A DNA stretch of 64,000 nucleotides. It comes from Macrostomum lignano (Eukaryota). Positions 10,789 to 59,520 of the stretch are shown one piece after another. The stretch's first letter is position 1. Each line of letters starts with the position of its first letter. The stretch spans positions 1 through 64,000 of the forward strand of contig NIVC01000967.1 of the NCBI GenBank assembly GCA_002269645.1. The letters run 5' to 3'. The notes under the pieces were generated by a model. That model searched no databases, was not told the origin of the DNA, and was given only the letters and a program-made list of their open reading frames with translations. A program made the position numbers and the translations under genes.

Positions 10789-13700
10789 AACTGCCTAGTG
10801 GCGCTGACCCACTTCTGCGAGGACCACGGGCCCTCGGTGGTGATGTGCACCCAGGCGGTGAGGCTGTCCGGCTTGCCGGTAGCCAAAGGCGGCAGCTGCT
10901 TGGACGGCGCAACAATCAGCTCGGCGCTGCCAGGCGGTCCGGCCAGTCTGACTTCAACGAAATGCCCGGCTTGCCGCTCGATGCCGCCCAACACCTTGGC
11001 AATGTACACAGCCGACTGGCAGGGCGACTTGCTGCTTGTGTCCAGCCAGCACCCAGCCGCTCCCAATCAGTTATATAGCCAGCTGCGTCAGGCCTGCCTT
11101 CGTGTGCACTCGTGCGAAGTCTGTCCAACCGGAGCTATGTACTTTGGCGACGATGCCGGCGGCGGCGGCGGCGGCGGCGGCTGCCACGTGTTCGCCAGTC
11201 CGTTCCAGCTAGACGACGTGAAAGCTCGCGGCCTGTCTAGCCAGTTCTCTGTGCTGGCGCTGTCGCGCGACGGTCGAATGCTGCTGCAATCCTGGCCTTG
11301 GCTGGTCAACCGCTCGGCCGAGATCATTGCCGGCCTGCGCGACGCCGCCGCAGCCCAGTTCTCAGCTGAGCAATCGGCCGGCTGTTCGGCTAGGGCTGCG
11401 CGAATCAACGGGTCCGGCTGGGTTCGAATGCGCCGGTCTGACGTGCCGACCAGGTCGCTGGCCCAGCTGACTAGCGATCCAAGCGTCTATAGGCGGTTGC
11501 ACACCTGCTTTGCCCGACTGTTGCGCGGCTGGCAACGGGAAGAGCTGGCGCCTGGCAGGCCTACCGAGGATCAGCTGGCTTTGGACTCGGTGCTGTGCCT
11601 GGCTGAGGAGGTGAGAGTGTGTGAGAGTGCTCGTGAGGACTAACCGGTCTGACCTGTCCTAAAGAATCGCCTCTGAGCTGCCCTTAGAAATTGCCTATGA
11701 GCTGCCCTTAGAAATTGCCTATGAGCTGCCCTAAGAATCGCCTCTGAGCTGTCATAAAGAATCGACGTTGAGTCTCCCTAAAAAAACAAACACCATCCCT
11801 GAGTCTCTAACACCATCCCTGAGTCTCTAACACAATCCTGAGTCTCTAACACCATCCCTGAGTCTCTAACACCATCTTCGAGTCTCTAACACAACCCTTG
11901 AGTCTCTAACACCATATTCGAGTATCTAATACCATCCTTGAGTCTCTAACACTATCTTCGAGTTTCTAACACCTTCCTTGAGTCTCTAACACCATCTTCG
12001 AGTCTCTAACACAATCCTTGAGTCTCTAACACCATCTTCGAGTCTCTAACACAACCCTTGAGTCTCTAACACTATCTTCGAGTTTCTAACACCTTCCTTG
12101 AGTCTCTAACACCATCTTCGAGTCTCTAACACAATCCTTGAGTCTCTAATACCATCGTCGACTCTCCCCTAAGGATTGTTCTTAAGCCGCCCCAAAAAAT
12201 GACTCTTTAAAATCGCTCTTTTCAATGCACTTGTAAGCATCTAAAGCTGGTTTTCACACACCAATAAGAAATAATCGTAGTTAATAAAAAAACAACCGTC
12301 TCAGGACGAAGACTCCGCAGATGACGGCATTCGCACTGTGGTTCCCACACCCACAAAACTTGTCGGAGGAGGCGGCGGCGGCGGCAGCAGCGGTCTAGGT
12401 GGGGAAGGCGTCCAGCTCCCGGTTGTGAGCGCAGTATTTCACTCTCTGCGCCACCTGCGCGAGCGTTTGCACCAGGCGCCGCCAGCTTGTCAGTCGATTG
12501 ATAATTTTAGTCTGCTGCTGCATCACCTGCTCACAGGCAATCAGATCGTGTTTCGAACTTCGCTGCCTGAACTGGCTAAATCATTTTTCACTTTGCTGCG
12601 TTGCCTACTGCCTAGCAACTGTTCTCAGGAGCTGCTCAACTGGCAACGATATGAGGAACCCTATAGGTGAGTGGGATTCTTGTAAGTTTAGATTGTGTAG
12701 GTCTTTGATCGCTGTGACATTATCAGGCCTGACTGTCTAATCGTCAGGCATGTGTACTCTCTGTGTCTTTGTGGTTGAATGTTCAATCCCGCTGAAAACG
12801 TCACCGAGACAAGAATCGCTAGAGTCATTGCAAACAACTCACTCAGTGACTCTAGCGTCTCTTGGGGCGACTCTTGTGGCTTTTTAACGACTCAAACAAC
12901 TGCAATGCGACGGAGAGGCGACTGTTGAGTCACGAGCGCATCGCGTGAGTTGCAGAGTCGTAATTAAAGAGTCGCGAAAGAAGTCGTTCAAGAGCCGTTG
13001 TGTTTGCGCTTAACTTTCTACTAACATAAGTAGACTAAATAGAGTTGTGTTATAAATGCGAAATGCGATTCTAATTCATTAAGTGACCAGATGCGCTTTA
13101 GACGCAACTCAGTGATTCTGCAGCGGCTCTGGCACGCCTCAGATACGACTCTACGGACTTCCTAATAGTCCGTCCTAGTTAGCATTTTATTATACGAATG
13201 GACCTTATTGAAAGTGTCTGGCTGCAATGGGTTATTTAACGGTCAGTTTCTATCATGCTGCATCATCAAACCAGGTGCAACCTGTTAGGCCTGACTGCCG
13301 ATACTCGCCTACCAGATTGGATCGCCGCCGACGGCGAGGGCCATCCAATGCTACTGCTGGACTGTCGGCCTGACGCGTCAGCGCTTGCTGCACAGGTAAG
13401 CTCTGGCTGGGCTTGTGCGTGTGCGTGAGTGTTGGTTGATGAGTGCTCCCTGGCGCTTATGTACCAGTACCTGGGTGATATAGCACTAACTGAAGCTGGG
13501 AGCAAGCAATTCAATCCTTTCGATGGAGAATCAAGCTATTGATAAAACTAAAGATAAAGCTCTCCTCACTAAATTCCTCGTCTGCCATATCCGGGTTTTT
13601 CTGATGAAATCTGTGGTTGCTCCATTGAACCATCTTTTGGACCATGGACAATGAAAAACAAGTCTTTAATAGCTGGATTCTCCCAGTGAGGGTTGAATTG

Positions 13701-15979
13701 ACTGCTACTAAGGCTCAATTGGCTTCGAAAAATGCTACATTAATTTGGGGACAAGCTGGCATTGTCGTGTGATTCACGACCATTAGGGCCAACCTCAAGG
13801 CACAGAGAGTGTACATGCTTTGAAGTCCGTGATGCAGTGACAGTTTGGCAAGAAACTTTAAAAGAGATAAACAACCTATCCATTAGTGTTGTTTTTAGTT
13901 AACATAGCGCCAAGTGAGGATTTTCCATAGACATTACCAGCGGACAAGCTGCCGTCATGGAGGAAACATGAAACAAGAGAAAAGGTTATCTATGTTAATA
14001 CTACAGCCTAGCATGCGCGTTAATCGTGAATTTCCCCCGCGTACAAGCTTCAGCCATTAAGAAATTAGGGGGGGGGCTATTATTAAATTCAAGCAGCCAA
14101 TGAAATTCATGGAAGGGATATCCCTATTTTTAGGAAGTCTTGGCCATAGACTCGCTTTCAGATGAGCGATCCTTTCTATTCCTTCATCCATGGCTGCCGT
14201 GCACACAGATTCAATTCACCCCTAGATGGGCCACTCAAGGCCGCAGTGCGAAAACCCCGGGGTTCAAGCCATAGACTGTAGCTTCTTTTGCGGTCAAGCA
14301 TTACCAGCAGCAGCTGGTGTCTGTGGCCCAAACCCTGGGTTTCCGTGACCTCGGAGAGGGCCGCTAAATACATTAGCGAATGCTGGAGCGACAGCTAAGT
14401 CTAATATAGAATCTGTAGCCGTGCATTTTCGTACTTCGTTTGAAGTCTTGACTTATCAGCGTATCATACACACTTCCGGCGGCTTATTTATTGTTTTATT
14501 AATGTATAACAAATAAAAGTTCCTACTTTGTTAGTAGTATGCATTTACCAACCCCAAAATACGCAACAAACATTGCAACAGGCTTTCATACCCGTAGACG
14601 ATCTGGATCTAGTAGTGACAACCAATAGGCCTGCCCGGCCGGCCGCTCAGCTGATTGGCCAAATTGACTCCCTGCTGGGCGATCCGGTGCTGCCTGAAGA
14701 GTCTCTCGATCTACTTCTGGCCAATGCTAAAGAGGATTGGCTAGAACGGGCTAGACAAACCTACGCTTTTATGCAGGTGAATATTTGTTTGATTGTGTAC
14801 TTTGGTGTCTGCCTAATCTGATAATTGGCAGTGGCTACTTCAAGTTAAATTTATTGATTGTCGCTATAAAGCGCGCCAATATCAGTGTAAGGAGCGCCAA
14901 TATAAGTGTAAGGAGCGCCAATATCAGTGCAAGGAGCGCCAATATCAGTGCAAGGAGCGCCAATATCAGTACAAAGGAGCGCCGATATCAGAACAAGGAG
15001 CGCCAATGTCAGTACAAAGGAGCGCCGATATCAGAACAAGGAGCGCCAATATCAACAGTAGGGGCGTCAATATCAGTAAGATTAGCGCCAATATCAGTAC
15101 AAGGGGCGCCAATATCAGTACAAGGGGCGCCCATATCACTACAGGAGCGCTAATATCAGTACAAGGGGCGCCAATATCAGTACAAGGGGCGCCAATATCA
15201 GTACAAGGGGCGCCAATATTAGTACAAGGGGCGCCAATATCAGTACAAGGGGCGCCAATATCAGTACAAGGGGCGCCAATATCAGTACAAGGGGCGCCAA
15301 TAGCAGTACAAGGGGCGCCAATATCAGTACAAGGGGCGCCCATATCACTACAGGAGCGCTAATATCAGTACAAGGGGCGCCAATATCAGTACAAGGGGCG
15401 CCCATATCACTACAGGAGCGCTAATATCAGTACAAGGGGCGCCAATATCAGTACAAGGGGCGCCAATATCAGTACAAGGGGCGCCAATATCAGTACAAGG
15501 GGCGCCAATATTAGTACAAAGGGCGCCAATATCAGTACAAGGGGCGCCCATATCACTACAGGAGCGCTAATATCAGTACAAGGGGCGCCAATATCAGTAC
15601 AAGGGGCGCCAATATCAGTACAAGGGGCGCCAATATCAGTACAAGGGGCGCCAATAGCAGTACCACCAGTAGCTCAGCGGGTCAAAAATTGTTCAAATCA
15701 GTTTTTAGATTGATCAAACCGATTGTAAAGCCGTAATTTGAAACGGCCTTAAGCCTTGCTGACACTACTATTAGTAGTTTAATCTAAAGGTAATTTGTTC
15801 ATAAATTGTGTCAAAAATGCAATTCGCAGGCGCACAGGCGGCAGTTCTCCGATGGCCAAGTGACCGCCTTTCTGTCCTCTCTAGGCTGTCAACGAGCCGA
15901 CGAGATTGTACTGAAATTCTGGACTCGCGGTATCAGCGGATTAACCCGTAGAGAGATTATCAAATCGTGCAGGCAATAG
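10789..15979 (+). CDS. FLCN: Folliculin; exons 10789-11610, 12305-12666, 13275-13395, 14582-14776, 15830-15979; initiator ATG not found in the genomic exon
   Basis: N-terminus NCLVALTHFCEDHGPSVVMCTQ resembles human [23 protein letters not shown]. It has CPACRS, then YEEPYR|CNLLGL across a phase-2 junction (human YEEAYRCNFLGL), and C-terminal LKFWTRG (human LKFWMTG). All junctions are GT-AG and phase-consistent. Confidence 0.92.
11665..12160. repeat. Minisatellites (24-bp, then 20-bp unit GAGTCTCTAACACCATCCTT) in FLCN intron
   Basis: Visible tandem arrays. Confidence 0.9.
12788..13156 (+). mobile_element. Partial copy of a non-autonomous DNA transposon (CCCG terminus, many GAGTC/GACTC subterminal motifs)
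   Basis: About 370 bp that are near-identical to the reverse complement of 25959-26329; begins CCCGCTGAAAACGTC. Confidence 0.75.
14872..15660. repeat. Minisatellite, 21-bp unit GCGCCAATATCAGTACAAGGG, in the last FLCN intron
   Basis: TACAAGGGG recurs at 15181, 15202 and 15223. Confidence 0.95.
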
Positions 15980-16188
15980 AAATTGCTGCCCTATGCTTGG
16001 CAGTTGGTTTTATATGTTTTGTCCATTGACGTTTTTTAGTTTTGTTTCAGTTGTTTAAATACTGGCTCGTTACTCTTTAGAGTAAATAATATCAAACATT
16101 TAGGAATTAGTTCTATTGTTGTGAATTAGAAATCTGCGTCTCCTTTGCTTATGCAAATCTTGTACACATTGCGCTAAATGCGTACACT

Positions 16189-16840
16189 GGTCCTTCAGCG
16201 GGTGGTTGCTGCTAGCCATTGGTCCTTCAGCGGGTGGTTGCTGCTAGCCATTGGTCCTTCAGCGGGTGGTTGCTGCTAGCCATTGGTCCTTCAGCGGGTG
16301 GTTGCTGCTAGCCATTGGTCCTTCAGCGGGTGGTTGCTGCTAGCCATTGGTCCTTCAGCGGGTGGTTGCTGCTAGCCATTGGTCCTTCAGCGGGTGGTTG
16401 CTGCTAGCCATTGGTCCTTCAGCGGGTGGTTTCTGCTAGCCATTGGTCCTTCAGCGGGTGGTTTCTGCTAGCCATTGGTCCTTCAGCGGGTGGTTTCTGC
16501 TAGCCATTGGTCCTTCAGCGGGTGGTTGCTGCTAGCCATTGGTCCTTCAGCGGGTGGTTGCTGCTAGCCATTGGTCCTTCAGCGGGTGGTTTCTGCTAGC
16601 CATTGGTCCTTCAGCGGGTGGTTGCTGCTAGCCATTGGTCCTTCAGCGGGTGGTTGCTGCTAGCCATTGGTCCTTCAGCGGGTGGTTGCTGCTAGCCATT
16701 GGTCCTTCAGCGGGTGGTTGCTGCTAGCCACTGGTCCTTCAGCGGGTGGTTTCTGCTAGCCATTGGTCCTTCAGCGGGTGGTTGCTGCTAGCCATTGGTC
16801 CTTCAGCGGGTGGTGCTGCTACCCATTGGTCCTTCAGCGA
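16189..16840. repeat. Minisatellite, 32-bp unit GGTCCTTCAGCGGGTGGTTGCTGCTAGCCATT
   Basis: About 20 near-identical copies downstream of FLCN. Confidence 0.95.
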
Positions 16841-17654
16841 ACCGCTCATAGCCCCCAAAAACCCCCACTTGCCGATAACTTTTTGATTCTATCTTACCTC
16901 GCGCATATGAAGTTCAATATCAATATGTCAATTATAAATTAGATGGATTATTCAAGACCTAGTTAGGTGCGAAATTGTTTTATACATAATTTGTTTCTTA
17001 TTTATTATTGAAATTCCCGCCAAAAAATATTTATAATCGATATTTAGTACTTACTATGCTACTACTGTTAAGATTTTGAACCTGCTTAAGCGCGTGTACT
17101 ACAGCCTACTGCTCGTCTACAAAGATTACATTTAATTTTTCTTAATTCTAAAGTCACTTTATTTATACATTTTTTAGCCATTTTAAATACAGCTTATATC
17201 TGCTGTAGCTGGCTGCTGCACTCATTGTTAGCTTGCAGTTTTCATTGCGCTTTATGTGTCCTCAGATTTATAGAATGCGGACATTTTTCTTTCTACGTAT
17301 TGCTGCGTCTTTCAGCAAATTCTCCCCCCCCGCAAAGCGCAGTGCTTTATGACTGCGTGTATATTTAACTGTTCAAAAGAATCGATGTATCCTACTGTTA
17401 GTAGGAGTCCAATTTCCTGTGGAAATTTTCAGTTAATCACATATACGCGCGACATGCGAATTATTCTACTTCATCACTGATTTTACAGACCGGCTTTCAG
17501 TGTGCGCGCTTTTTGTATTTCCACAGCGCAGAGCAGATATTTTATAAACTTGATAGCAAATAAATTTGCAAAGATATATATATATATTTTTCCTTTGTTT
17601 TGGTATTTCTGTTATTTTTGTATCAAACTAGGTGTCAATGGATACATACATACA

Positions 17655-17996
<342 letters not shown>

Positions 17997-18120
17997 GACA
18001 TGTTCGAGCTACGCTAGATTTTCAATCACTTACATCAGCTGTTGCTTTTCCTGGTCAAGCAGAAAGCATTAGCCTGCAAGCCGCCCTCTAACAGCTTCAG
18101 CTGCAGCCGTAGATAGCGCA

Positions 18121-18876
18121 ATGAATTCGCACGCCCAGCAGGCGGCGCCCTATCACGAGCGCCAGCGACTATTATTATGCGCGGTGCACGCGGCTAATAA
18201 TCTTCTGCAACGGCCAGAGTTCACTCAGAGCCAGTTTGACCAGCTGTGCCAGTCTTTGTCGCCGCAACAGGTCAGGTTATTAGCTTGCTTATCGCCCTTA
18301 CTGACTCAGGTTACCGTGTGCACTGCTTAGATACCTATCTATGCCTACATGGGTCACTAACCTATGCTCATTCAATATCCTTTAATATAATATCATTATT
18401 AAAAGTACACCCGTCGCCGGGCCCGCTATCTCTCCCGACAGACCTGGCTGCTAAATCCTCATCGGAATCCCCTCGGCCTTGGCAACTACGACGCTAACGT
18501 GTTGGACGCCGCCTTGCAGAGCCGCGGCCTTCGCCTAGTCTGGTTCGACCGGCGCAAACCGGTCGCCTGCCTGCTGCCCGACAGAATCGAAGGCTTCCTA
18601 ATCAATTACCAATCGGCTGCCTGCTCCGTGCTGCCGATAATCCGCTCCCGCCATTGGGTGGCGCTCCGGCGCTGCGGCCCGAACAATGAGTATCATAATC
18701 TGGATTCCAAAATGGCCGAGCCCAGCCTCATTGGTTCAGGACAGCCTGCCGATCTGCTGCACTATCTGCAGGCCAGGCTGGATGCCGACGCCAGTCTGCA
18801 GATTCTCCCGGTTGTACTGCCCGAGGTGGCCGACTCTGGCGACTGGCAGCTGGCGCAACCGGCGTCTGATGAATGA
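18121..18876 (+). CDS. JOSD: Josephin-domain deubiquitinase (JOSD1/2-like); exons 18121-18270, 18442-18876
   Basis: YHERQRLLLCAVHAANN, LGNYDANVL, RHWVAL and YHNLDSK match Josephin motifs. The Cys-His-Asp catalytic triad is present, and the GT-AG intron is phase 0. Confidence 0.93.
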
Positions 18877-18981
18877 TAGAGGTTGATTAATTAATTTATA
18901 TGCGATGTTTACCTCTTGCTGCTCTCTACTACATAGCTAAGGATCAGTGGTATGGCCAGTATTTTCCTTAATATTTCCTTA

Positions 18982-19452
18982 AGTAGATTGTAAAAATATT
19001 GTTGAGTAGATTGTAGAGATTGTTGAATAGATTGTACGGAGATTGTTGAGTAGATTGTACGGAGATTGTTGAGTAGATTGTACGGAGATTGTTGAATAGA
19101 TTGTACGGAGATTGTTGAGTAGATTGCAGGTAAGATTGTTGAGTAGATTGTAGAGATTGTTGAATAGATTGTACGGAGATTGTTGAGTAGATTGTACGGA
19201 GATTGTTGAGTAGATTGTACGGAGATTGTTGAATAGATTGTACGGAGATTGTTGAGTAGATTGCAGGTAGATTGTTGAGTAGATTGCAGGTAGATTGTTG
19301 AATAGATTGTACGGAGATTGTTGAGTAGATTGTAGGGAGATTGTTGAGTAGATTGTAGGGATATTGTTGAGTAGATTGTAGGGATATTGTTGAGTAGATT
19401 GTAGCGAAGATTGTTGAGTAGATTGCAGGTAAGATTGTTGAGTAGATTGTGA
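18982..19452. repeat. Minisatellite, ~23-bp unit GATTGTTGAGTAGATTGTACGGA
   Basis: Visible array just after the JOSD stop codon. Confidence 0.93.
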
Positions 19453-19487
19453 AGGGTTTAAATAAGCTGTCAATCATCTTTGTAATA

Positions 19488-19939
19488 CGCATTAGGCGCA
19501 CGTTTGGGAATCTGGCAGCGGAGGCAGATTGAGGCGGGAGCGCGATTAATGTACCTAATGAGCTAATGGGAGCTAGATGAAGGTACCTAATGAGCCAATG
19601 GGAGCTAGATTAGTGTACTTAACTAGCTAATGGAGGTCATTTCAGCTAGATTAGTGTACCTACATGTAACTAGCTAATGGGGGTCATTTCAGTTTGATTA
19701 GTGTACCTAACTAGCTAATGGGGGTCATTTCAGCTAGATTAGTTTACCTAACTAGCTAATGGGGGTCATTTCAGCTAGATTAGTATACCTAACTAGCTAA
19801 TGGGGGTCATTTCAGCTAGATTAGTGTACCTAACTAGCTAATGGGGTCATTTCAGCTAGATTAGTGTACCTAACTAGCTAATGGGGGTCATTTCAGCTAG
19901 ATTAGTGTACCTAACTAGCTAATGGGGGTCATTTCAGCT
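19488..19939 (-). repeat. Inverted duplicate of the 3' end of XYLT intron 1 plus 24 nt of exon 2
   Basis: The reverse complement matches about 23090-23559: ~8 units of the 41-bp satellite, the unique acceptor region and ATTCCCAAACGTGCGCCTAATGCG. Confidence 0.9.
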
Positions 19940-20409
19940 GAATTCAAACTCTTGGAAAAATGTGATGGCAGATGAGCTCAAGCTTTGTCTACCTCAGATG
20001 CATGAGATAGCCAATTAGTTCTGTTAACTAATAATTCAATAGTTTATGCCTAATTTTCATTTATCAACTGCTCGCACGCATGCTTCTGTGCTTATGTCTT
20101 TCTTATAACATACCGTGTTCTCGTGCGCCGAATTAAATTCCTTTTTCGGATAGTGTAACTTTATTGCCGCATCATTGCATCTTCCAGTGCTTATCTTAAT
20201 CCTAAATGTGTTAAATAAATTTTTTAACTGTAATTAAGTTTTGAGTCAGCAGATTGTGTAATTTGTACTTTTATCTCAACTACGCAGCTATAAAAATAGA
20301 ACAAGATAGACTCAAATGTTTATTAATTACCCCTTTGCTAGTAATTCAGTTAGGACTTTTAGAATTCGAGTTATCTTTAGTCTAGAATCGCAAGATTAAC
20401 CCCATTAAA

Positions 20410-21340
20410 AATCGCCCCTGATCCCTATGAAAATTGCCTCTGACCTCCGCTGGAATCGCCACTGATCGCTCAAAAATCGGTTAATCTATGTTAATAATCA
20501 CCTCTAAATGATAAAATCGCCCCTAAATCACCTAGAATCGCCTCTAAATCATTGATAATCGCCCTTAAATCATCGAGAATCGCCCCTAGATCCTCAAGAA
20601 TCGCTCCTAAGTAAAAAATCGCCCTTAGATCCTCAAGAATCGCCCTTAAATCATCAAGAATCGCTCCTAAATAAAAAATCGCCCTTAGATCCTCAAAAAT
20701 CGCCCCTAAATCATCAAGAATCACCCCTAGGTCATCAAGAATCGCCCTTAAATAACCGAGAATCGCCCCTAGGTCGTCAGGAATCGCCCCTAAATCATCA
20801 AGAATCGCCCTTAAATCACCGAGAATCGCCCCTAGGTCGTCAGGAATCGCCCCTAGATCATCAAGTATCGCCCCTAGGTCGTCAAGAATCGCCCCTAGAT
20901 CATCAAGAATCGCCCCTAGGTCATCAAGAATCGCCCTTAAATCACCGAGAATCGCCCCTAGGTCGTCAGGAATCGCCCCTAGATCATCAAGTATCGCCCC
21001 TAGGTCGTCAAGAATCGCCCCTAGATCATCAAGAATCGCCCCTAGGTCATCAAGAATCGCCCTTAAATCACCGAGAATCGCCCCTAGGTCGTCAGGGATC
21101 GCCCCTAGATCATCAAGAATCGCCCCTAGGTCATCAAGAATCGCCCTTAAATCACCGAGAATCGCCCCTAGGTCGTCAGGGATCGCCCCTAGATCATCAA
21201 GAATCGCCCCTAGATCGTCAAGAATCGCCCCTAGATCATCAAGAATCGCCCTTAAATCACCGAGAATCGCCCCTAGGTCGTCAGGGATCGCCCCTAGATC
21301 ATCAAGAATCGCCCCTAGATCGTCAAGAATCGCTCCTAGC
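20410..21340. repeat. Minisatellite, ~21-bp unit AAGAATCGCCCCTAGATCATC, upstream of XYLT
   Basis: Visible array. Confidence 0.93.
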
Positions 21341-21462
21341 CTTCTATGAACTCATCAAATTGTTATAATATCTCTAACAATCAATAAACAGTCTCAGATT
21401 CATTTGCTGCATCTCATGGCACGCTCAATGATCTAATTTAATGCCTGCTCGCTGCTTGAACT

Positions 21463-24400
21463 ATGAGCGGCTCAAAACGCAGGCATCTTGGCCTACTATT
21501 AGTAGCAGCACTAGCGTCTGTCGTCTGTCTCTGCTTACTCGGCCATTTAAACTGGTTATTTAATTCGGACAGAGCCGCCGGACAGCCGCTGGCCGAATGG
21601 GAGCGCCTGCCGGATGGACCGGAGTCGCCAGACGATGGCTGCAGGCTCCGCTCCGAGCGGGCGCGCTATGCCGTTGACAGGGCAGCTCAGCCCGAGTGCC
21701 GGCGTCGGCTGCTGCGCGTCGCTTGCGCCTTCGAGTCTGGCCGGCTGCCATACCGGCTGCGGCATGTCGGACAGGCCTGTCCGGCTAGACTACTGTCCGG
21801 CTCTGGCCCGGCCACTTCCTGTCACAGCCTGCTACAGTCGGACAGTTGTCCGTATCCGCGCGAAGTGATTCCGTCGGCCAGTTGGACGAACAATATGCCG
21901 GCAGAGAGCCGGCGAGGCGAATGCTTGGCCAGATGTCGCTCGGCCGGCTATCGGCTGGCTAGCATTAGCAACCGGGACTGCGTCTGTCTTCAGTTGCTAG
22001 GCAACGGTTGCAGCCGACCTGCTATTGGCTATAATTGCACAGGTGCTTCGATTAGAGATGGTTACTATCTGGTTAGCCAAACCGGGCTCAATGCTAGCTC
22101 TTTGTTTGTGTCTCATACCGCACCTGCCTACGGTCCCGAGTTCGAATCCTATAGCTGGGAGAACGATCGAGTTCGATTAGTCTACCTGATGACGCTCAGC
22201 GGTAGAGGTGTGCGACAGGTAATGCGGCTGTTATCGGCTGTGTACTATGTTAATCATTATTACTATATACATGTGGACTCTAGAGACGATTTCCTGTACG
22301 AGTCGCTGATGCCGCTGGTAGCCAGGTGAGCACTGTTTGATTGATCTTAGGGTTCTAGGTAGGTAGGTAATAGGGTATCATCGGAACCTACCTACCCCAG
22401 TAGCTCATTAGGTACATTAATTTACGAGCTCCCATGACCCCATTGGCTAGTTAGGTACACTAATCTAGCTGAAATGACCCCCATTAGCTAGTTAGGTACA
22501 CTAATCTAGCTGAAATGACCCCATTGGCTAGTTAGGTACACTAATCTAGCTGAAATGACCCCCATTAGCTAGTTAGGTACACTAATCTAGCTGAAATGAC
22601 CCCCATTAGCTAGTTAGGTACACTAATCTAGCTGAAATGACCCCATTAGCTAGTTAGGTACACTAATCTAGCTAAATTGACCTCCATTAGCTAGTTAGGT
22701 ACACTAATCTAGCTGAAATGACCCCATTAGCTAGTTAGGTACACTAATCTAGCTGAAATGACCCCCATTAGCTAGTTAGGTACACTAATCTAGCTGAAAT
22801 GACCCCATTAGCTAGTTAGGTACACTAATCTAGCTGAAATGACCCCCATTAGCTAGTTAGGTACACTAATCTAGCTGAAATGACCCCCATTAGCTAGTTA
22901 GGTACACTAATCTAGCTGAAATGACCCCATTAGCTAGTTAGGTACACTAATCTAGCTGAAATGACCCCATTAGCTAGTTAGGTACACTAATCTAGCTGAA
23001 ATGACCCCCATTAGCTAGTTAGGTACACTAATCTAGCTGAAATGACCCCATTAGCTAGTTAGGTACACTATTCTAGCTGAAATGACCCCATTAGCTAGTT
23101 AAGTACACTAATCTAGCTGAAATGACCCCCATTAGCTAGTTAGGTACACTAATCTAGCTGAAATGACCCCCATTAGCTAGTTAGGTACACTAATCTAGCT
23201 GAAATGACCCCATTAGCTAGTTAAGTACACTAATCTAGCTGAAATGACCCCCATTAGCTAGTTAGGTACACTAATCTAGCTGAAATGACCCCATTAGCTA
23301 GTTAAGTACACTAATCTAGCTGAAATGACCCCCATTAGCTAGTTAAGTACACTAATCTAGCTGAAATGACCCCCATTAGCTAGTTAGGTACACTAATCTA
23401 GCTGAAATGACCCCCATTAGCTAGTTAGGTACACTAATCTAGCTCTCATTGGCTCATTAGGTACCTTCATCTAGCTCCCATTAGCTCATTAGGTACATTA
23501 ATCGCGCTCCCGCCTCAATCTGCCTCCGCTGCCAGATTCCCAAACGTGCGCCTAATGCGCCGCCGCTTCCCCACCATCTGGGGCGGCACAGGCCTCCTGG
23601 ATCTGATGCTGGCAGCATTTCGCGACCTGCTCAACTGCACCGATTGGCACTGGGATTTCGTAATCAACCTGAGCGAGTCGGATTTCCCTATTAGGCCGGA
23701 TCGGCAGTTGACCGCCTACCTGACCGAGATGAGGCATCTCAGCTTCTTGGCCTCGCACTCAGGAAACTACAGCGATTTCATGCGCAAGCAAGCTATTGAG
23801 CGCTACTTTGTACAGTGCGACAATCATATGTACTTTCTGGGCAGCCGGCAGCCAATAGAAGGCCTGCTGTTCGACGGCGGCTCTGATTGGCTGACGTTAA
23901 ATAGAGAATTTGTACAGTTTGTTATCAGCGGACTGGATAATAACCACACTATTGTGACCAATATTGTAGAGTATTTTAAATACGGCCTGCTACCAGGTTT
24001 GTAAAACTGTTTCTGTTATCAATCTCTTTGTGTGATGTTTTGTATTTATAGTATTCTGAAGTTGCTGGGATAAATCATCTGATCCTTTAAAGGCCCCAAA
24101 TTATAGGGGTAAATATCCCCAAGTACCTGTGTTTTAGGACACGTTTTAGAATAAAAAAATCCTCACGTGTATACGAGTAATCCAGATCCCAATGTCCCGG
24201 TATCTTCAAATCGAAATCCCAACTCTGGGATTTTATAGCCGAAATCCCCACTCAGTTTGAGATCCCTAATCCAGGGATTTTATAGCTGAAATCCTCACCC
24301 AGATTGAGATCCCAAATCCTCACCCAGATTTTAGAGCCGAAATCCTCACCCAGATTGAGATCCCAAAATCCAGGGATTTTAGAGCCAAAATCCTCACCCA

Positions 24401-27400
24401 GTTTGAGATCCCAATTCCAGGGATTTTAGAACCGAAACCCTCACATGTATATGAGTAGTCGAGATCCCATGTCCCGGTATCTTCAAATCGAAATCCCATT
24501 CTGCGATCCCTAAGGGCCTGTATTTCATAACCGAAATCCTTGGATTTGGGATCAAGATCCTCAAGTTCCAGCAGTACAGCAGCACGGCCCAACCAATCCA
24601 AACCCGCAGTGGAGTCTGTGTTCCACACCATCGCCCAGAACACTGAGCTATGCGGCCGGGTTGCCAACGCCAACCTCCGCTTGGTTAATTGGGACCGGAA
24701 GCGCGGCTGCCGGTGCCAGCACCTGCCGGTGGCTGACTGGTGCGGCTGCAGTCCCATGGTCTACCGGGGCGCCGAGGCTGCCGCCTACGCCAGCAGCAGC
24801 GGCAGCGGTGGTCACGGCGCTTTCTTTGCCAGAAAATTCGACCCAACAATCAGCGTGTCGGCTGTCGATGCCGCCTACGCCGAATTGATGAAGCAGCGGC
24901 ACGGAGGAGCCGCTGGCCGGGAGATGCGCGCCAAGCTCGGCCGGCCGCGCTACTGGCTCAGCGCGTTCACAGCTGGGGCGCCAGGCCTGACGCCGGTGCA
25001 GAGCGCCTTTGGCCGACTGTTGACTCGGCTGCTCTGCGCCGAACTGCTGTCCGGCACGTGTCCGGCTGGCTTCGATCCCGACAGTGTGCGCGCTGTTGAA
25101 GTGACCGAGTTCTACCTGGAGGACGCGTTCCAGGGTCCCTTGCTGACCGCCTCGATTGGCGGCGGTGTCGGCGGCGGCGGCGGCACCAACGCGGCGATGC
25201 TCCTAGACGCGCACTTCAGCCTGCAGTCTGGCATCGGATCCGGCCAAGCTGTCCGGATTGTCCACCCCAAGCAGCAACCGCATGGCAACGCGTCATCTTC
25301 GACGTCGGCCTACCAGTCTGTGATTGCCGCCAGGTTTATGGAGTTCGAGGTGAATTGCAGCGAATGCCCGATGAAAATGGTTCCTAGGTCAAGAAGCGTC
25401 CCAAGGGGGGGGGGGCGTAGCCCAGCGGTAGCGCAGCTGCTCTGGTGTGCCAGCGACCCAGGCTCGATTCCAAGTGCAGTCACATTAATTTGGGGCTGAA
25501 TTGGAATCTCGGCTTGGCTCTGCTCGTGCAATTAACGGCCTTGAGAGCCAACCCCCCAAGGCGCAGTGAAGTGTACATGCCTAACGATAAATAAAGTTAG
25601 GGCCGCTGTACACTCCTGTGTGAGTGTGTGCCTGCGTACGTATCCGCGCTTGTGTGCCTGCTCAGGGGAGTCGGCGGAATGGGCAGTAATGCCTCTCGCC
25701 GGTTGCGTGCCTATGTCGCTTAAAGTGCGCCAGGGTGCACACAACCCCCCTGCCTCTAATAAAAAAAAGAAGCGTCCCAGAGTCACTTGCGTCACCGCAA
25801 AGTCGTTAGAAGAGACTCAAGATGACTCTAAAACGGAGAGTTCACTGTTACAAATTGCCAAAAACTTGTCAAAGTGTCGCCTAAAAGTCTCATTTTGAGG
25901 CGTTGTATTGTCTGAAACTATATAACAACTCTGGGGGGCCTCTATAATGACCCTGGGGCCGTAGAGTCGTATCTGAGGCGTGCCAGAGCCGCTGCAGAAT
26001 CACTGAGTTGCGTCTAAAGCGCATCTGGTCACTTAATGAATTAGAATCGCATTTCGCATTTATAACACAACTCTATTTAGTCTACTTATGTTAGTAGAAA
26101 GTTAAGCGCCAACACAACGGCTCTTGAACGACTTCTTTCGCGACTCTTTAATTACGACTCTGCAAATCACACGATGCGCTCGTGACTCAACAGTCGCCTC
26201 TCCGTCGCATTGCAGTCGTTTGAGTCGTTAAAAAGTCACAAGAGTCGCCCCAAGAGTCGCTAGAGTCACTGAGTGAGTTGTTTGCAATCACTCTTTAGCG
26301 ATTCTTGTCTCGGTGACGTTTTCAACGGGATAAATTGTGCGTTTTAATAGACCGTATGAGTATAGTGAGTGACCAGCTACTTGAAAGGCATTCTTTAGTT
26401 GGAGCAAGTTCTCAACCAGAGACCAAAATAGTTTTTGCTGTAAAGCTTGGGGGAATGCTCACAATAAACTTCTCTGTTTATTGATGCAGACCATGCAGGG
26501 AATCTTTAAGACTTATTGTTCCTGGTGCAAAATGGTTGCTAACCATTCTAAATGCGCTTAATTGAACTGTTGAGCATCCTTGATCGGCCTTCGAAACACC
26601 TGTCTTCAGTTTGCATAGACCACAATATCTTGGCCTCTATTCACATTCGTAATCTATTGTAGTTTTAGTTCTTTTGAGGGAAAATTGGCCTTCAAAACTT
26701 TTCTTGAGTCTCGCATGATTCTTATTCGACAGGTTGGCCGCCAATATGATTGGAAAGAGGACCTCTTCCGGGACCGCTTGTCCCTGCTGGCCGCCGGCCG
26801 GGCCGCCGACTCCGGCCTGCAGCTGCGCTACGCCTGGGGCCCGGGGCCGGCCGTGACGGCCACCTTCCTGCTGCTGGACCCGGACGGCGCTATCCGATCG
26901 GCTTTCCAGCTCAGCGTCCCGGAACTGCTACTGGCTGAGGATTCAACAGCCAAGGAGGTCGGCTGCACCGATCTGCAGGCACCCGGCAGTCTGGAGCCCG
27001 GCGTCTGGCGCCTGCTGCTTCTTGATGAACAGCAGCCGCTTTCGGTCGGATCCGCCGTAGCTGAGTCCGAGTTCATCCTGTTGCCAACCGGTTCCGATGC
27101 CCATAGCAACCAGCTAGTGAAGCCGGATCCTAATTCGCCACAATACCTGGCCCTGTTCAAAGCCGTACCCGCCGCGTCCATTGCTCAGCTTCGATTAGCT
27201 AATAGAAATCCGGCCGAATCCGCCGCGGCCAATCCGGACATCCGGCTGGCTGTCCGGCTGCTGTCCAGGCGCTACAGATTGGAGACCGTCTGCCGGCACT
27301 CGGACAGTTCGGACAGTGCGGCCGCCTCTTCAGCCGCTTGTCCGGGAATTGTTGGCCTGACTGATTCGTGCTCTGGTTCGGACTGGAGCACCCGGTATGC

Positions 27401-27458
27401 GGATCTGCGGTACCGCCTGGGCGGCCTCGACCCGCTCACCGGCCACCTGCGGAATTAG
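21463..27458 (+). CDS. XYLT: Protein O-xylosyltransferase (XYLT/oxt/sqv-6 type); exons 21463-22325, 23536-23996, 24610-25349, 26733-27458
   Basis: Type II membrane anchor, WSC-like Cys segment, YYIHVDSR, TIWGG, WDFVINLSESDFPIR, DGGSDW, LLPVESVFHT across a junction, NLRLVNWDRKRGCRCQH..DWCGCSP, FFARKFD, VGRQYDWKEDLFR. Phases are consistent. Confidence 0.94.
22440..23430. repeat. Minisatellite, 40-41 bp unit TTAGGTACACTAATCTAGCTGAAATGACCCCCATTAGCTAG, in XYLT intron 1
   Basis: About 24 copies. Confidence 0.95.
24165..24540. repeat. Imperfect direct repeats (GAAATCCTCACCCAGATTGAGATCCC-type) in XYLT intron 2
   Basis: Recurring units plus a duplicated TGTCCCGGTATCTTCAAATCGAAATCCC block. Confidence 0.8.
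25367..26329 (-). mobile_element. Non-autonomous DNA transposon with short TIRs CCCG(A/T)TGAAAA (CMC/EnSpm-like), interrupted by a SINE
   Basis: Left end CCCGATGAAAA at 25367 and right end TTTTCAACGGG ending 26329. Dense GAGTC/GACTC motifs. A second partial copy lies at 12788-13156. Confidence 0.6.
25404..25766 (+). mobile_element. tRNA-derived SINE with A-tail and 13-bp target site duplication
   Basis: A box TAGCCCAGCGG, B box GGCTCGATTCC, tail [28 protein letters not shown] at 25391-25403 and 25767-25779. Confidence 0.85.
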
Positions 27459-27467
27459 GGAGTGCTG

Positions 27468-27811
27468 CTGTATGTCTGCTGTTTCCCTGGTGGTCCTTTG
27501 GTAGCCTGTCTGCCTGCTGTTTCCCTGGTGGTCCTTTGGTAGCCTGTCTGCCTGCTGTTTCCCTGGTGGTCCTTTGGTAGCCTGTCTGCCTGCTGTTTCC
27601 CTGGTGGTCCTTTGGTAGCCTGTCTGCCTGCTGTTTCCCTGGTCTTTTGGTAGCCTGTCTGCCTGCTGTTTCCCTGGTGGTCCTTTGGTAGCCTGTCTGC
27701 TTGCTGTTTCCCTGGTCCTTTGGTAGCCTGTCTGCCTGCTGTTTCCCTGGTGGTCCTTTGGTAGCCTGTCTGCCTGCTGTTTCCCTGGTCCTTTGGTAGC
27801 CTGTCTGCCTG
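27468..27811. repeat. Minisatellite, 38-bp unit, starting ~10 bp after the XYLT stop
   Basis: GTTTCCCTGG recurs at 27481 and 27519. Confidence 0.93.
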
Positions 27812-28304
27812 ATAATCGGATAAATGAAGTCATTACTTTGTATTTGCATTTCATACTACTTAAATACGAAAGAAATGATGCGCAGCAGTAGTAGCATAAG
27901 TTCATGCTATGATTTTTTATTTCAAGTTGACATCTGTTATGCTCTTTTTGTTAATAATAATATTCCATCTGCGAGCTATAGATTGTTTTCAAAGCATTCA
28001 AAGGTGTTTAGTATTACTAATTGATTGACATTTTTGTGCCTGCGTTGTTCCCATCGGATCTGTTCAACTTGTTTGCCTTATTCTGTTAGGGCTTTGTGTT
28101 TAGCTTTTTACGTATAATTTGAATTTTACGCTTTTAAACTACGACGTACATAATCCTTTTATGTTTGTTTGCCATTTTGGTAACCAACCCATCCCCAGTT
28201 TGTTGGTGTAAAACTTTTTATGAGTACTAAACAGGATTAAAGTGAAAATGGTTTGTATTCAGTTGTATTGACTTCTTTGCTTTCTCATTTGTTTTTAGAC
28301 CCTG

Positions 28305-28545: not shown

Positions 28546-28609
28546 GTTCCTGGCACTGTACAGCCATCTCAGCCGTCTGCCCACTCCAGCGGGTGCGCTG
28601 CTCTCCAAG

Positions 28610-34500: not shown

Positions 34501-37500
34501 GTGGCACCTACTGCTGCGCTACGAGAGATGCGTTGCCAGCCAGATGGCCGCCTGCAGGGCCCTCTGCCAGCCTTGTTTTCACAGCCGGGAGACCTGGCAG
34601 GCGCTGATGGAGGTGATAAGGGGATCGACAGTTGTAAGATCGCCCCTACCCTGAAGAATCCGCCCCTACCCTGAAGAATCCGCCCCTATCCTGAAGAATC
34701 CGCCCCTACCCCGAAGAATCCGCCCCTACCCTGAAGAATCCACCCCTATCCTGAAAAATCCGCCCTACCCTGAAGAATCCGCCCCTACCCCGAAGAATCC
34801 GCCCCTACCCTGAAGAATCCGCCCCTACCCTGAAGAATCCGCCCCTACCCTGAAGAATCCGCCCCTACCCTGAAGAATCCGCCCCTACTCTGAAGAATCC
34901 ACCCCTATCCTGAAGAATCCACCCCTATCCTGAAAAATCCGCCCCTACCCGAAGAATCCGCCCCTACCCCGAAGAATCCGCCCCTACCCTGAAGAATCCG
35001 CCCCTACCCTGAAGAATCCACCCCTATCCTGAAGAATCCGCCCCTACCCCGAAGAATCCGCCCCTACCCTGAAGAATCCACCCCTATCCTGAAAAATCCG
35101 CCCCTACCCTGAAGAATCCGCCCCTACCCCGAAGAATCCGCCCCTACCCTGAAGAATCCACCCCTATCCTGAAAAATCCGCCCCTACCCTGAAGAATCCG
35201 CCCCTACCCCGAAGAATCCGCCCCTACCCTGAAGAATCCGCCCCTACCCTGAAGAATCCGCCCCTACCCTGAAGAATCCGCCCCTACCCTGAAGAATCCG
35301 CCCCTACTCTGAAGAATCCACCCCTATCCTGAAGAATCCACCCCTATCCTGAAAAATCCGCCCCTACCCCGAAGAATCCGCCCCTACCCTGAAGAATCCG
35401 CCCCTACCCTGAAGAATCCGCCCCTACCCTGAAGAATCCACCCCTATCCTGAAGAATCCGCCCCTACCCGAAGAATCCGCCCCTACCCTGAAGAATCCAC
35501 CCCTATCCTGAAAAATCCGCCCCTACCCTGAAGAATCCGCCCCTACCCGAAGAATCCGCCCCTACCCTGAAGAATCCGCCCCTACCCTGAAGAATCCGCC
35601 CCTACCCTGAAGAATCCGCCCCTACCCTAAAGAATCCGCCCCTACTCTGAAGAATCCACCCCTATCCTGAAGAATCCACCCCTATCCTGAAAAATCCGCC
35701 CCTACCCCGAAGAATCCGCCCCTACCCTGAAGAATCCGCCCCTACCCTGAAGAATCCGCCCCTACCCTGAAGAATCCGCCCCTACCCTAAAGAATCCGCC
35801 ACTACTCTGAAGAATCCACCCCTATCCTGAAGAATCCACCCCTATCCTGAAAAATCCGCCCCTACCCCGAAGAATCCGCCCCTACCCTGAAGAATCCGCC
35901 CCTACCCTGAAGAATCCGCCCCTACCCTGAAGAATCCACCCCTATCCTGAAGAATCCGCCCCTACCCCGAAGAATCCGCACCTACCCTGAAGAATCCACC
36001 CCTATCCTGAAAAATCCGCCCCTACCCTGAAGAATCCGCCCCTACCCGAAGAATCCGCCCCTACCCTGAAGAATCCACCCCTATCCTGAAAAATCCGCCC
36101 CTACCCTGAAGAATCCGCCCCTACCCCGAAGAATCCGCCCCTACCCTGAAGAATCCACCCCTATCCTGAAAAATCCGCCCCTACCCTGAAGAATCCGCCC
36201 CTACCCCGAAGAATCCGCCCCTACCCTGAAGAATCCGCCCCTACCCTGAAGAATCCGCCCCTACCCTGAAGAATCCACCCCTATCCTGAAAAATCCGCCC
36301 CTACCCCGAAGAATCCGCCCCTACCCTGAAGAATCCGCCCCTACCCTGAAGAATCCGCCCCTACCCTGAAGAATCCACCCCTATCCTGAATAATCCGCCC
36401 CTACCCCGAAGAATCCACCCCTACCCTGAAGAATCCACCCCTATCCTGAAAAATCCGCCCCTACCCTGAAGAATCCGCCCCTACCCCGAAGAATCCGCCC
36501 CTACCCTGAAGAATCCACCCCTATCCTGAAGAATCCACACCTACCCTGAAGAATCCGCCCCTACCCTGAAGAATCCACCCCTACCCTGAAGAATCCACCC
36601 CTATTCTGAAGAATCCGCCCCTACCCCGAAGAATCCGCCCCTACCCTGAAGAATCCGCCCCTACCCTGAAGAATCCGCCCCTACCCTGAAGAATCCACCC
36701 CTATCCTGAAGAATCCGCCCCTACCCCGAAGAATCCGCCCCTACCCTGAAGAATCCACCCCTATCCTGAAGAATCCACACCTACCCTGAAGAATCCGCCC
36801 CTACCCTGAAGAATCCACCCCTACCCTGAAGAATCCACACTATACCTGCCACCAACCATCGCGGCCAGGTGGTCAGAGACGAGCGCCAGTACTATCGAGT
36901 CCGCATGCAGGCCTGCTACGCTCTGTGCATGATCAGCGGCCCGCTAGACCTGCTGGAGCCCCTCATGGCCGTCTTTCTGTCCCTGTTCGGCGCCAAGGAC
37001 ACCAGGTCGGTGACGCCGGCGAACGATTTCTCAAATCTCCAACGCTATTTCCTATTGAAAGAGGTGCCTCTGTGCATGTCGCTGCTGCACACAGCCCAGG
37101 GCGTCTGCCCGCCTGAGGTGCCCGAATTCATTCTCAATCTGTTGCGGTTCAACGACAATTCTAAGAATATCTACGCTGACGACTACTATCGGGCTGCGCT
37201 CATCGAGTCACTGTTTCGAACCGTTAGTCCTGCAGCCACTGTTACTACCGAGAATTTCCTGGCCAAGCTGCCGAAGCCTATTGCTGCGCTGCTGGAGGAG
37301 GTGTGTGGCTTGATTGGGGCCGGATGGGGCGGATGTCAGTGAGAGGGCGGTTCGAGATTGTCAGTGAGAGGGGGCGGATCGGGAATGTCAGTGAGAGGGC
37401 GGTTCGAGATTGTCAGTGAGAGGGGGCGGATCGGGAATGTCAGTGAGGGGGCGGTTCGAGATTGTCAGTGAGAGGGGGCGGATCGGGAATGTCAGTGAGG

Positions 37501-47094: not shown

Positions 47095-47368
47095 GCTAAT
47101 TGCCAGCAATGTCTGACTGTCAGTTGTAGCTAATTGTCAGGCAATATCTGACCGTCAGTGGTAGATAATTGTCAGCAATGTCTGACTGTCAGTGGTAGAT
47201 AATTGTCAGCAATGTCTGACTGTCAGTGGTAGCTAATTTTCAGGCAATATCTGACCGTCAGTGGTAGATAATTGTCAGCAATGTCTGACTGTCAGTGGTA
47301 GATAATTGTCAGCAATGTCTGACTGTCAGTGGTAGCTAATTGTCAGGCAATATCTGACTGTCAGTGGC
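47095..47368. repeat. ~34-bp repeat related to the 17-bp ATTGTCAG satellite
   Basis: GTCAGTGGTAGATAATTGTCAGCAATGTCTGACT repeated. Confidence 0.85.
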
Positions 47369-58138: not shown

Positions 58139-58364
58139 CTGCTATTGGTTGACGCTTTTCTTGCTACTGCAATGCGTCAATCATTTTAGGACAGAAAAAT
58201 GAGCGGCCTAGATTTGGCATTCGATATTCTACTTAAACTACTTAAAACGGTGTAAATCAAGTAGTATTTGAAATCAACTCGGTTTACAAAATCGAAATTT
58301 TACAACGTAAAAGCGTAAGGAACATGAAACACAGAATTAGCTGCCAACGATTTAGGTTATGGTA

Positions 58365-58690
58365 GGGTTAGATGAGGGTTAGGGTTTAGGTTAGGATAAG
58401 GTAGGCTTTAAGTGAGGGTTAGGGTTTAGATCATGGTAGGGTTTATGGTTTAAACTAGGGTTTACGTTACGTTAGGGCTTAAGTGAGGGTTAGAGTTTAG
58501 GTTAGAGAAGGGTTCAGGTGATCGAGGGTTAGAGTTTAGGTTAGGGTAGGGTTATGAGTTTTTGTTACGGTAGGGTTTAGGAGAGCTTAGAGTTTATGTT
58601 ACGGTAGGGTTTAGGAGACGGTTAGAGTTTAGGTTACGGTAGGGTTGGGTCTAGGGCGGGTTGGGTCTAGGGTGGGTTGGGTCTAGGGCC
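58365..58690 (+). repeat. Degenerate telomere-like (TTAGGG-related) interstitial repeat
   Basis: Many GGGTTAG / TTTAGG / GGTAGGG variants on one strand. Confidence 0.7.
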
Positions 58691-59365: not shown

Positions 59366-59520
59366 AGACCTGTCATAGTGTCTTTATGCCTTGGCTGACC
59401 TGTCCTAGTGTGTCATGGCTGACCTGTCCTTGTGTGTCATGGCTGACCTGTCCTAGTGTGTCTTTGCTGACCTGTCCTTGTGTGTCATGGCTGACCTGTC
59501 CTAGTGTGTCTTTGCTGACT
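59366..59520 (-). repeat. Inverted copy (~6 units) of the ADAP1 intron-2 24-bp satellite
   Basis: GCTGACCTGTCCTTGTGTGTC is the reverse complement of GACACACAAGGACAGGTCAGC. Confidence 0.9.

Follow-up and report, generated by a model that had tools for sequence, protein, structure and literature searches.

The JOSD-XYLT locus

The sequence analysed here is a 64,000-nt stretch of the Macrostomum lignano contig NIVC01000967.1 (hereafter, the window), in which a gene for a Josephin-domain deubiquitinase (JOSD) is followed on the same strand by the xylosyltransferase gene XYLT. JOSD bears the annotation name BOX15_Mlig011848g1, and all the relatives returned by a homology search share at most 51% identity with it. 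XYLT is modelled with four exons (21463-22325, 23536-23996, 24610-25349, and 26733-27458), and because the translation of this model is 100% identical to the annotated M. lignano XYLT over 929 aa, the start of exon 2 at 23536 is correct; an exact look-up of the product of the exon 1 open reading frame gave no match. The features of the locus are as follows.

18121..18876, forward strand: JOSD coding sequence, exons 18121-18270 and 18442-18876, 194 aa, stop codon at 18874-18876
18982..19450, forward strand: 23-nt minisatellite between the JOSD stop and the inverted copy
19488..19939, reverse strand: inverted copy (left arm), reverse complement of 23115-23559
19940..20514, forward strand: unique spacer, 100% identical across four contigs
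20515..21339, forward strand: 21-nt minisatellite upstream of XYLT exon 1
21463..22325, forward strand: XYLT exon 1, ATG at 21463, donor GT at 22326, inside the loop between the arms
22434..23444, forward strand: 41-nt minisatellite of XYLT intron 1, 24.9 units, with a 41+40 higher-order alternation
23115..23559, forward strand: source arm (best register), comprising the final 421 nt of XYLT intron 1 and 24 nt of exon 2
23536..23996, forward strand: XYLT exon 2, whose first 24 nt encode (R)FPNVRLMR, conserved in orthologues

The unique spacer contains an ATTAAA at 20132, an AATAAA at 20214, and the TATA-like box TATAAAAA at 20289. At the gathering thresholds of Rfam, no RNA family was detected in the window; a tRNA-like stretch suspected near 25400-25470 was also unsupported, as ARAGORN reported no tRNA.

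A splice junction copied in reverse

It had been proposed from the letters alone that the spacer between the two genes carries an inverted copy of the XYLT intron 1/exon 2 junction, and BLAST, pairwise alignment, and a search for the unique core all bear this out. The copy begins 612 nt downstream of the JOSD stop and lies 3.2 kb from its source; BLAST aligns 19488-19939 with 23559-23115 at 96.2% identity over 452 columns, so that the two form a long inverted repeat with highly complementary arms, and a repeat search pairs 19488-19662 with 23385-23559 at 98%. From its XYLT exon end, the left arm is composed of the following parts.

19488-19511, reverse strand: reverse complement of the first 24 nt of XYLT exon 2
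19512-19544, reverse strand: reverse complement of the CAG and the pyrimidine tract
about 19545-19602, reverse strand: degenerate 32-nt units
19603-19939, reverse strand: eight 41-nt satellite units, of which one reaches 47 nt through an insertion of ACATGT

The 57-nt core (CGCGCTCCCGCCTCAATCTGCCTCCGCTGCCAG followed by ATTCCCAAACGTGCGCCTAATGCG) has exactly two matches in the window, one on each strand, where none is expected by chance, and it is the same in both arms, without a single difference. Pairwise alignment shows that the identity stops right after ...AATGCG, 24 nt into exon 2, and that the splice acceptor is still intact in the copy. The small differences between the arms noted in the sequence-only reading are real: the alignment gives one substitution in the exon-proximal 115 nt, with a further two among the first repeat units, and it places the 6-nt ACATGT insertion in the copy. 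The part termed unique amounts to no more than about 33 nt of pyrimidine tract and the 24 exon nucleotides; from there to the 41-nt units, the sequence is made up of degenerate 32-nt variants of that satellite. The satellite portion of the arm can in fact pair in alternative registers anywhere within 22434-23444.

Because the copied exon fragment encodes the conserved FPNVRL motif, the XYLT gene is the source and the intergenic copy is derived.

Four assembled copies of the locus

The inverted copy is found at identical breakpoints in four of four contigs (NIVC01000967, 1868, 2686, and 1989), which represent three distinguishable haplotypes. All the copies of the locus are about 99.3% or more identical, with a divergence of 0.2-0.7% among the haplotype copies. 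The same fixed differences between the arms are present in all four contigs, which otherwise vary by single-nucleotide variants and repeat number: the array in XYLT intron 1 has 25, 21, 17, and 17 units, and the inverted copy has 8 units in every one.

The assembly is PacBio-based and redundant (PMC5730564), and a fold-back or chimeric read could in principle create such a structure. An artefact of this kind is nevertheless exceedingly improbable, as had been argued from the arm differences, because four contigs with distinct single-nucleotide variants and unit numbers share the same breakpoints; moreover, private variants are found in each arm, the inverted copy is lodged between unique flanks, and the structure is thus not confined to one contig or read set lacking independent variants.

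At the DNA level, two arms of 452 bp that are 96% identical and 3.2 kb apart might recombine homologously and flip the XYLT promoter and exon 1, and an invertible cassette had indeed been envisaged. The interval between the arms, with exon 1, has a single orientation in all four independently assembled copies, and there is therefore no sign of inversion. The flipped form would also inactivate a conserved gene, and we regard such a cassette as highly improbable.

Another possibility is a Foldback-like mobile element, with the arms as terminal repeats built of tandem units. Each arm does consist mostly of tandem units of variable number, and a second pair of this type lies 35 kb away. However, the loop holds a conserved host exon (XYLT exon 1) rather than a non-host interior, one arm terminates within a conserved host exon, no target-site duplication is seen at the junctions, and the 41-nt satellite is found nowhere else in the window, all of which make a mobile element very improbable.

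The exon-proximal 115 nt contain one difference between the arms, as against 0.2-0.7% between the haplotype copies, and the duplication is therefore young, yet predates the split of the haplotype copies. The structure is thus a genuine, young inverted segmental duplication, fixed in the sequenced line; on balance, we favour the view that it is a neutral or mildly deleterious passenger, which could form double-stranded RNA, rather than a selected regulator.

The JOSD 3' end and a shared transcriptional unit

The first ATTAAA and AATAAA downstream of the JOSD stop (18876) are those at 20132 and 20214, beyond the copy, just as the sequence-only reading had stated; it drew from this that JOSD mRNA would carry antisense to the XYLT 3' splice site. 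On such a reading, a mature JOSD mRNA with the copy in a long 3' UTR would act in trans on the XYLT pre-mRNA. Both the absence of AATAAA/ATTAAA from the JOSD stop to 20132 and the long 3' UTRs crossing repeats in the source annotation (PMC5730564) speak for this. The argument from missing signals is weak, however, because FLCN and XYLT likewise have no canonical poly(A) signal for 1580 and 778 nt past their stops; M. lignano probably uses other poly(A) signals or long UTRs generally, to judge from these sequences, so the missing signals do not single out JOSD. In addition, the annotated gene ranges examined cover the coding sequence only. We consider a mature antisense 3' UTR of this type unlikely.

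A read-through precursor from JOSD to XYLT, also suggested in the earlier reading, receives indirect support from the annotation. JOSD and XYLT are unrelated genes, and at all the loci they carry a common transcriptional-unit prefix (Mlig011848, as g1/g2, and Mlig022546); in the source annotation, such prefixes denote assembled precursor RNAs that were afterwards cut into genes (PMC5730564). The neighbouring same-strand genes PRDX5 and ADAP-like, taken as a control, have different prefixes, and the prefix is therefore informative. A JOSD-XYLT read-through precursor is thus plausible, and because both genes are annotated in one transcriptional unit, the inverted copy is probably transcribed, at least within read-through precursors. 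The identifiers Mlig011848 and Mlig022546 did not turn up in the supplements of two M. lignano papers or among the full texts searched.

The spacing of the genes points in the same direction. The intergenic distance of 2586 nt, less 1698 nt of tandem repeats, gives a repeat-adjusted distance of 888 nt between these adjacent same-strand genes, and the operon threshold for M. lignano is a repeat-adjusted spacing of <1 kb (PMC8629364). The locus thus resembles the SL operons and precursor units of this species (PMC5730564, PMC8629364) in its adjacent same-strand genes, repeat-rich spacer, and shared unit name. It differs in that the typical acceptor motif is missing: the 300 nt before the XYLT ATG contain no trans-splice-type acceptor YTNCAG, only ATAAACAG and GTCTCAG, and thus no back-splice or SL acceptor is evident for XYLT exon 1. 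Neither paper describes an inverted downstream splice junction in a spacer. The TATA-like box at 20289 is a hint that XYLT might be driven by a promoter of its own downstream of the inverted copy.

Predicted pairing and its possible effect on splicing

The arm duplex has a calculated energy of -846 kcal/mol. In the minimum-free-energy fold of a 4.25-kb read-through RNA, 438 of the 452 left-arm nucleotides pair with 23115-23559, and the resulting 438-bp stem runs from the branch region over the pyrimidine tract and the AG to 24 nt inside the exon. The prediction that the arms would pair and mask the intron 1 acceptor is thus reproduced in silico. In a read-through RNA, the copy would pair with the acceptor in a stem of about 440 bp, and such an RNA would be a poor substrate for intron 1 splicing and a substrate for enzymes that process double-stranded RNA.

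It could be that this pairing has been selected as a cis-regulatory hairpin, acting by acceptor masking, hairpin siRNAs, or exon 1 back-splicing in JOSD-to-XYLT precursors, so that the output of XYLT would be uncoupled from, or tuned by, JOSD read-through. The common transcriptional unit, the predicted stem from the branch region through 24 exon nucleotides, and an arm length unchanged in four copies beside a variable intron array are all in keeping with such a hairpin, as is the position of the arms on either side of exon 1, given that complementary sequences flanking an exon favour its circularisation. On the other hand, youth alone accounts for the high arm identity, the mature XYLT mRNA matches just 24 nt of the stem, YTNCAG is missing in the 300 nt upstream of the XYLT ATG, and the TATA-like box hints at a promoter downstream of the copy. 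We therefore hold a selected hairpin to be quite unlikely. A bolder form of the idea, namely that the copy is a selected element of the polycistronic unit and pairs with the acceptor so that JOSD read-through yields no XYLT mRNA, is in our estimation distinctly unlikely; it would work either by a splicing block, by feeding the stem to Dicer or ADAR, or by circularisation of exon 1. The constant number of eight units and the intact acceptor could reflect constraint, or simply the shortness and youth of the copy.

Work by Jeck (2013), Zhang (2014), and Liang and Wilusz (2014) is said to have established that intronic complementary sequences, such as inverted Alu pairs, flank circularised exons. 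The XYLT locus shares with them the complementary arms on both sides of an exon, but here the exon in the loop is the first of its gene and lacks any evident acceptor upstream, and the downstream arm, instead of lying deep in an intron, takes in the acceptor of exon 2.

Origin and comparison with known systems

A 452-bp block was copied in reverse into the JOSD-XYLT spacer, most likely by template switching during replication or repair in DNA rich in minisatellites, and the arrays later changed length independently, leaving 17-25 units in the intron and a fixed 8 in the copy. Replication template switching of the FoSTeS/MMBIR type yields inverted duplications, and the present case is similar in being a local inverted copy a few kilobases from its source in repeat-rich DNA. 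It differs in showing no visible microhomology at the breakpoints, so that the assignment is by exclusion only; neither a target-site duplication nor clear microhomology marks the junctions, and any repair mechanism named for them is therefore conjecture.

Young plant MIRNA genes are reported by Allen and colleagues (2004) to have formed through inverted duplication of their target genes. The M. lignano copy shares this origin, in that a segment of the prospective target was duplicated in inverse orientation close to or beside it, but here the organism is an animal, and one arm is still the working gene and not a locus apart.

Long inverted repeats are described as abundant in eukaryotic genomes in general, and LIRBase as holding 6.6 million of them from 424 genomes (PMC8728187). 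Like these repeats and the hpRNA loci of Drosophila that give rise to endo-siRNAs, the M. lignano structure is a long, near-perfect inverted repeat that arose from part of a protein-coding gene, and its placement allows both arms to lie on one transcript. In contrast to the hpRNA loci, its 3.2-kb loop includes a functional exon, and no more than 24 nt of the stem correspond to the mature target mRNA (the rest being intron and satellite). A search of the literature on inverted repeats, hairpins, and intronic minisatellites in Macrostomum found nothing specific.

As a passenger, the copy would be a clean, dated example of minisatellite-rich DNA spawning local inverted duplications that capture a working splice site, and it calls for caution when reads are mapped or transcripts assembled here. 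Were the copy functional, no earlier case would be known of a gene-derived hairpin acting within a flatworm precursor transcript. M. lignano can be made transgenic, and its poly(A), SL, and RNA-seq data are public, so that the question of function is cheap to settle.

A second inverted minisatellite pair

The window contains another inverted pair, formed by 24-mer arrays at 56597-57308 and 59392-59519. Its occurrence points to a recurrent, common mutational process. If the XYLT copy were nevertheless a selected element, the second pair would hint that stems built of repeats are a recurrent insulating device in a genome that is rich in repeats and bears operons. When PRDX5 and the ADAP-like gene, which carry this pair, were tested for a common transcriptional unit, none was found, and their assignment to separate units weakens the link between inverted pairs and operons. 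The 24-mer arrays flank the 5' exons of the ADAP-like gene, and two further contigs carry the same inverted pair, in which the unit numbers differ greatly.

The inverted copy and its source

The inverted repeat that links the Josephin-domain deubiquitinase gene (JOSD) with the xylosyltransferase gene (XYLT) is real, is fixed in the sequenced line, and is derived from XYLT. In the window, the first 64 kb of NIVC01000967.1 (assembly Mlig_3_7), FLCN, JOSD, XYLT, and TAF2 follow one another in this order on the + strand. The two genes concerned are modeled as follows:

18121-18270, 18442-18876; + strand; JOSD, two exons, 194 aa
21463-22325, 23536-23996, 24610-25349, 26733-27458; + strand; XYLT, four-exon model

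The XYLT model shows 100% identity over 929 aa to the M. lignano protein PAA74223.1 (BOX15_Mlig011848g2). The sequence-only reading had placed a reversed copy of the XYLT intron-1/exon-2 junction at 19488-19939, and a repeat search, self-BLAST, and pairwise alignment all find it there. Self-BLAST of the window returns a single alignment, 19488-19939 against 23559-23115 (96.2% over 452 columns), and the repeat search pairs 19488-19662 with 23385-23559 at 98% complementarity, besides the many alternative pairing registers given by the satellite. A 57-nt core, made up of the last 33 nt of intron 1 (pyrimidine-rich, with a final CAG) and the first 24 nt of XYLT exon 2, has exactly two matches in the window, one per strand, where none is expected by chance. 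According to the pairwise alignment, the homology breaks off sharply 24 nt into exon 2, the 115 nt nearest the exon contain one difference between the arms, and 6 nt, ACATGT, are inserted in one repeat unit of the copy. Within the window, the 41-nt satellite is confined to XYLT intron 1 and the copy. The arms do contain the satellite, pyrimidine tract, AG, and 24 exon nucleotides attributed to them, but the intron stretch described as unique is not fully so, because the 41-nt units are separated from the pyrimidine tract by degenerate 32-nt versions of this satellite.

The copied 24 exon nucleotides encode (R)FPNVRLMR. Because FPNVRL is kept in a comparison with eight XYLT orthologues, the XYLT gene is the source and the intergenic block the derived copy; copying ran from XYLT into the JOSD-XYLT spacer.

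Four assembled copies of the locus

The same locus is present on three more contigs, NIVC01001868, 2686, and 1989. In all four contigs the inverted copy has the same position and breakpoints, and its flanks are 100% identical, over 47 nt toward JOSD and 575 nt toward XYLT. The XYLT intron-1 array (22434-23444 in the window) varies in length, with 25, 21, 17, and 17 units, while the copy has eight units in every contig; the inverted copies vary at four positions, and their divergence among haplotypes or homeologues is 0.2-0.7%. A chimeric-read artefact, already argued against in the sequence-only reading, is therefore very improbable: four distinct contigs share breakpoints yet differ in SNV-type sites and unit number. 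In all four contigs the arms differ by the 6-nt insertion and by the substitution beside the unique core, and these fixed differences place the duplication before the split of the haplotypes or homeologues; with one difference in 115 nt of non-satellite sequence, it is nevertheless still young. The proposal that the arms bracket an invertible cassette is hardly tenable, because exon 1 and the unique spacer between them have one orientation, with no inverted state, in all four contigs.

A 41+40 higher-order alternation across the intron-1 array is seen only in NIVC01000967.1, and the other three loci (L002-L004) have long runs of 40-nt units. Single-base length differences affect the last JOSD exon of contig 2686 (L003 743-1176), where the annotation gives an 83-aa fragment, and XYLT exon 1 of contig 1989 (L004 9243-10104); either the redundant copies carry true frameshifts or PacBio sequencing introduced indel errors.

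Transcription and predicted folding

JOSD and XYLT are annotated as BOX15_Mlig011848g1 and Mlig011848g2 on NIVC01000967.1, and on the other contigs both carry the prefix Mlig022546 (g1 to g6). In the source annotation of M. lignano, assembled transcripts are termed transcriptional units (PMC5730564), and a prefix common to two unrelated proteins is possible only with one assembled unit holding both. As a control we used the neighboring same-strand PRDX5 and ArfGAP/PH "ADAP-like" genes, whose rebuilt models both exactly match database entries. Because their prefixes differ (Mlig019989 and Mlig007475), the common JOSD/XYLT prefix is informative evidence for an RNA reading through from JOSD into XYLT, with the caveat that transcript assemblers can be misled by spacers rich in repeats. 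The 2586-nt spacer includes 1698 nt of tandem repeats, and the remaining 888 nt is below the 1-kb repeat-adjusted distance used as the operon-calling threshold for M. lignano (PMC8629364). The acceptor motif reported for SL trans-splicing, YTNCAG (PMC8629364), occurs at most 25 nt upstream of the start codons of JOSD (18095-18106) and TAF2 (28584-28589) and was not found within 300 nt upstream of the XYLT start. Given this absence, and a TATA-like box, TATAAAAA, at 20289 between the copy and the XYLT start, a separate XYLT promoter 3' of the copy may drive some or most of the transcription of this gene. The copy is probably transcribed within a precursor.

Folding of the + strand RNA gives -846 kcal/mol for the arm duplex, versus about -145 kcal/mol when each arm is folded singly. 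Across the 4251 nt of 19400-23650, the minimum-free-energy structure joins 438 of the 452 nt in the left arm to 23115-23559 and places all 60 bases around the XYLT intron-1 acceptor within the stem. The suggestion that arm pairing masks this acceptor is thus borne out in the predicted fold, provided that a single RNA contains both arms; a very long stem could then bury the acceptor. Whether the arms meet on one transcript depends on the speed of JOSD 3'-end cleavage compared with that of transcribing the 3.6 kb that follow.

The copy might instead act in trans, as antisense carried in the JOSD 3' UTR. The first ATTAAA/AATAAA after the JOSD stop do lie beyond the copy, at 20132 and 20214, as had been noted, and neither signal was found in the intervening 1256 nt (18876-20132). 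However, both are equally absent for 1580 nt after the FLCN stop (15979-17559) and for 778 nt after the XYLT stop (27458-28236), so the argument from poly(A) signals carries little weight, and we regard the trans-antisense reading as unlikely. The signal-free stretches, each of which contains minisatellites, are either long repeat-filled 3' UTRs or reflect the use of other poly(A) signals.

Other inverted repeats and the origin of the copy

The window contains about 40 minisatellite arrays, in agreement with the published figure of 15% simple and tandem repeats in the M. lignano genome (PMC5730564), and two further inverted pairs:

56597-57308 and 59392-59519; inverted to each other; second pair, 24-nt units, 29 and 5 units
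12786-13156 and 25959-26331; opposite orientation; third pair, 373-nt dispersed repeat, 97% identity, sharp ends

The larger 24-nt array is intronic in the ADAP-like gene (minus strand), and the five-unit array lies 150-280 nt past the stop of PRDX5, the upstream gene, so that the pair brackets ADAP exons 1-2; the two genes belong to separate transcriptional units, and no common unique flank was found between the arrays. The same inverted layout recurs in contigs 1868 and 2686 (L005 3076-4750 and 7010-9040; L006 3100-4750 and 7010-8800), with about 60-69 and 45 units versus 29 and 5 in the window. The 373-nt repeat, with one copy in an FLCN intron and one in XYLT intron 3, probably represents a short, non-autonomous mobile element; for the XYLT-derived copy itself, a transposon origin has very little probability.

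Inverted local copies of satellite stretches are common in the window, which speaks for a mutational process rather than an adaptation specific to this locus. A regulatory hairpin maintained by selection, for which the predicted burial of the acceptor might speak, is rather improbable. We lean, by somewhat more than an even chance, towards a young, near-neutral inverted duplication, in which a reversed XYLT block would have entered the satellite-rich JOSD-XYLT spacer through repair or template switching. In general terms, long inverted repeats are described as abundant across eukaryotes (PMC8728187), and the XYLT/JOSD inverted copy is a further example of an already known type of feature.

The arrays seem to fall into families and not to have arisen independently, since the minisatellites at 20515-21339, 34641-36836, and 38848-39416 have in common a core near GAATCGCCCC, and those at 47097 and 49257, and at 1609 and 14873 (inverted), form related pairs. 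Degenerate TTAGGG-like repeats (58352-58646) lie between the ADAP-like gene and PRDX5, and a 1.2-kb GA-rich low-complexity tract (60281-61527) lies inside the PRDX5 intron.
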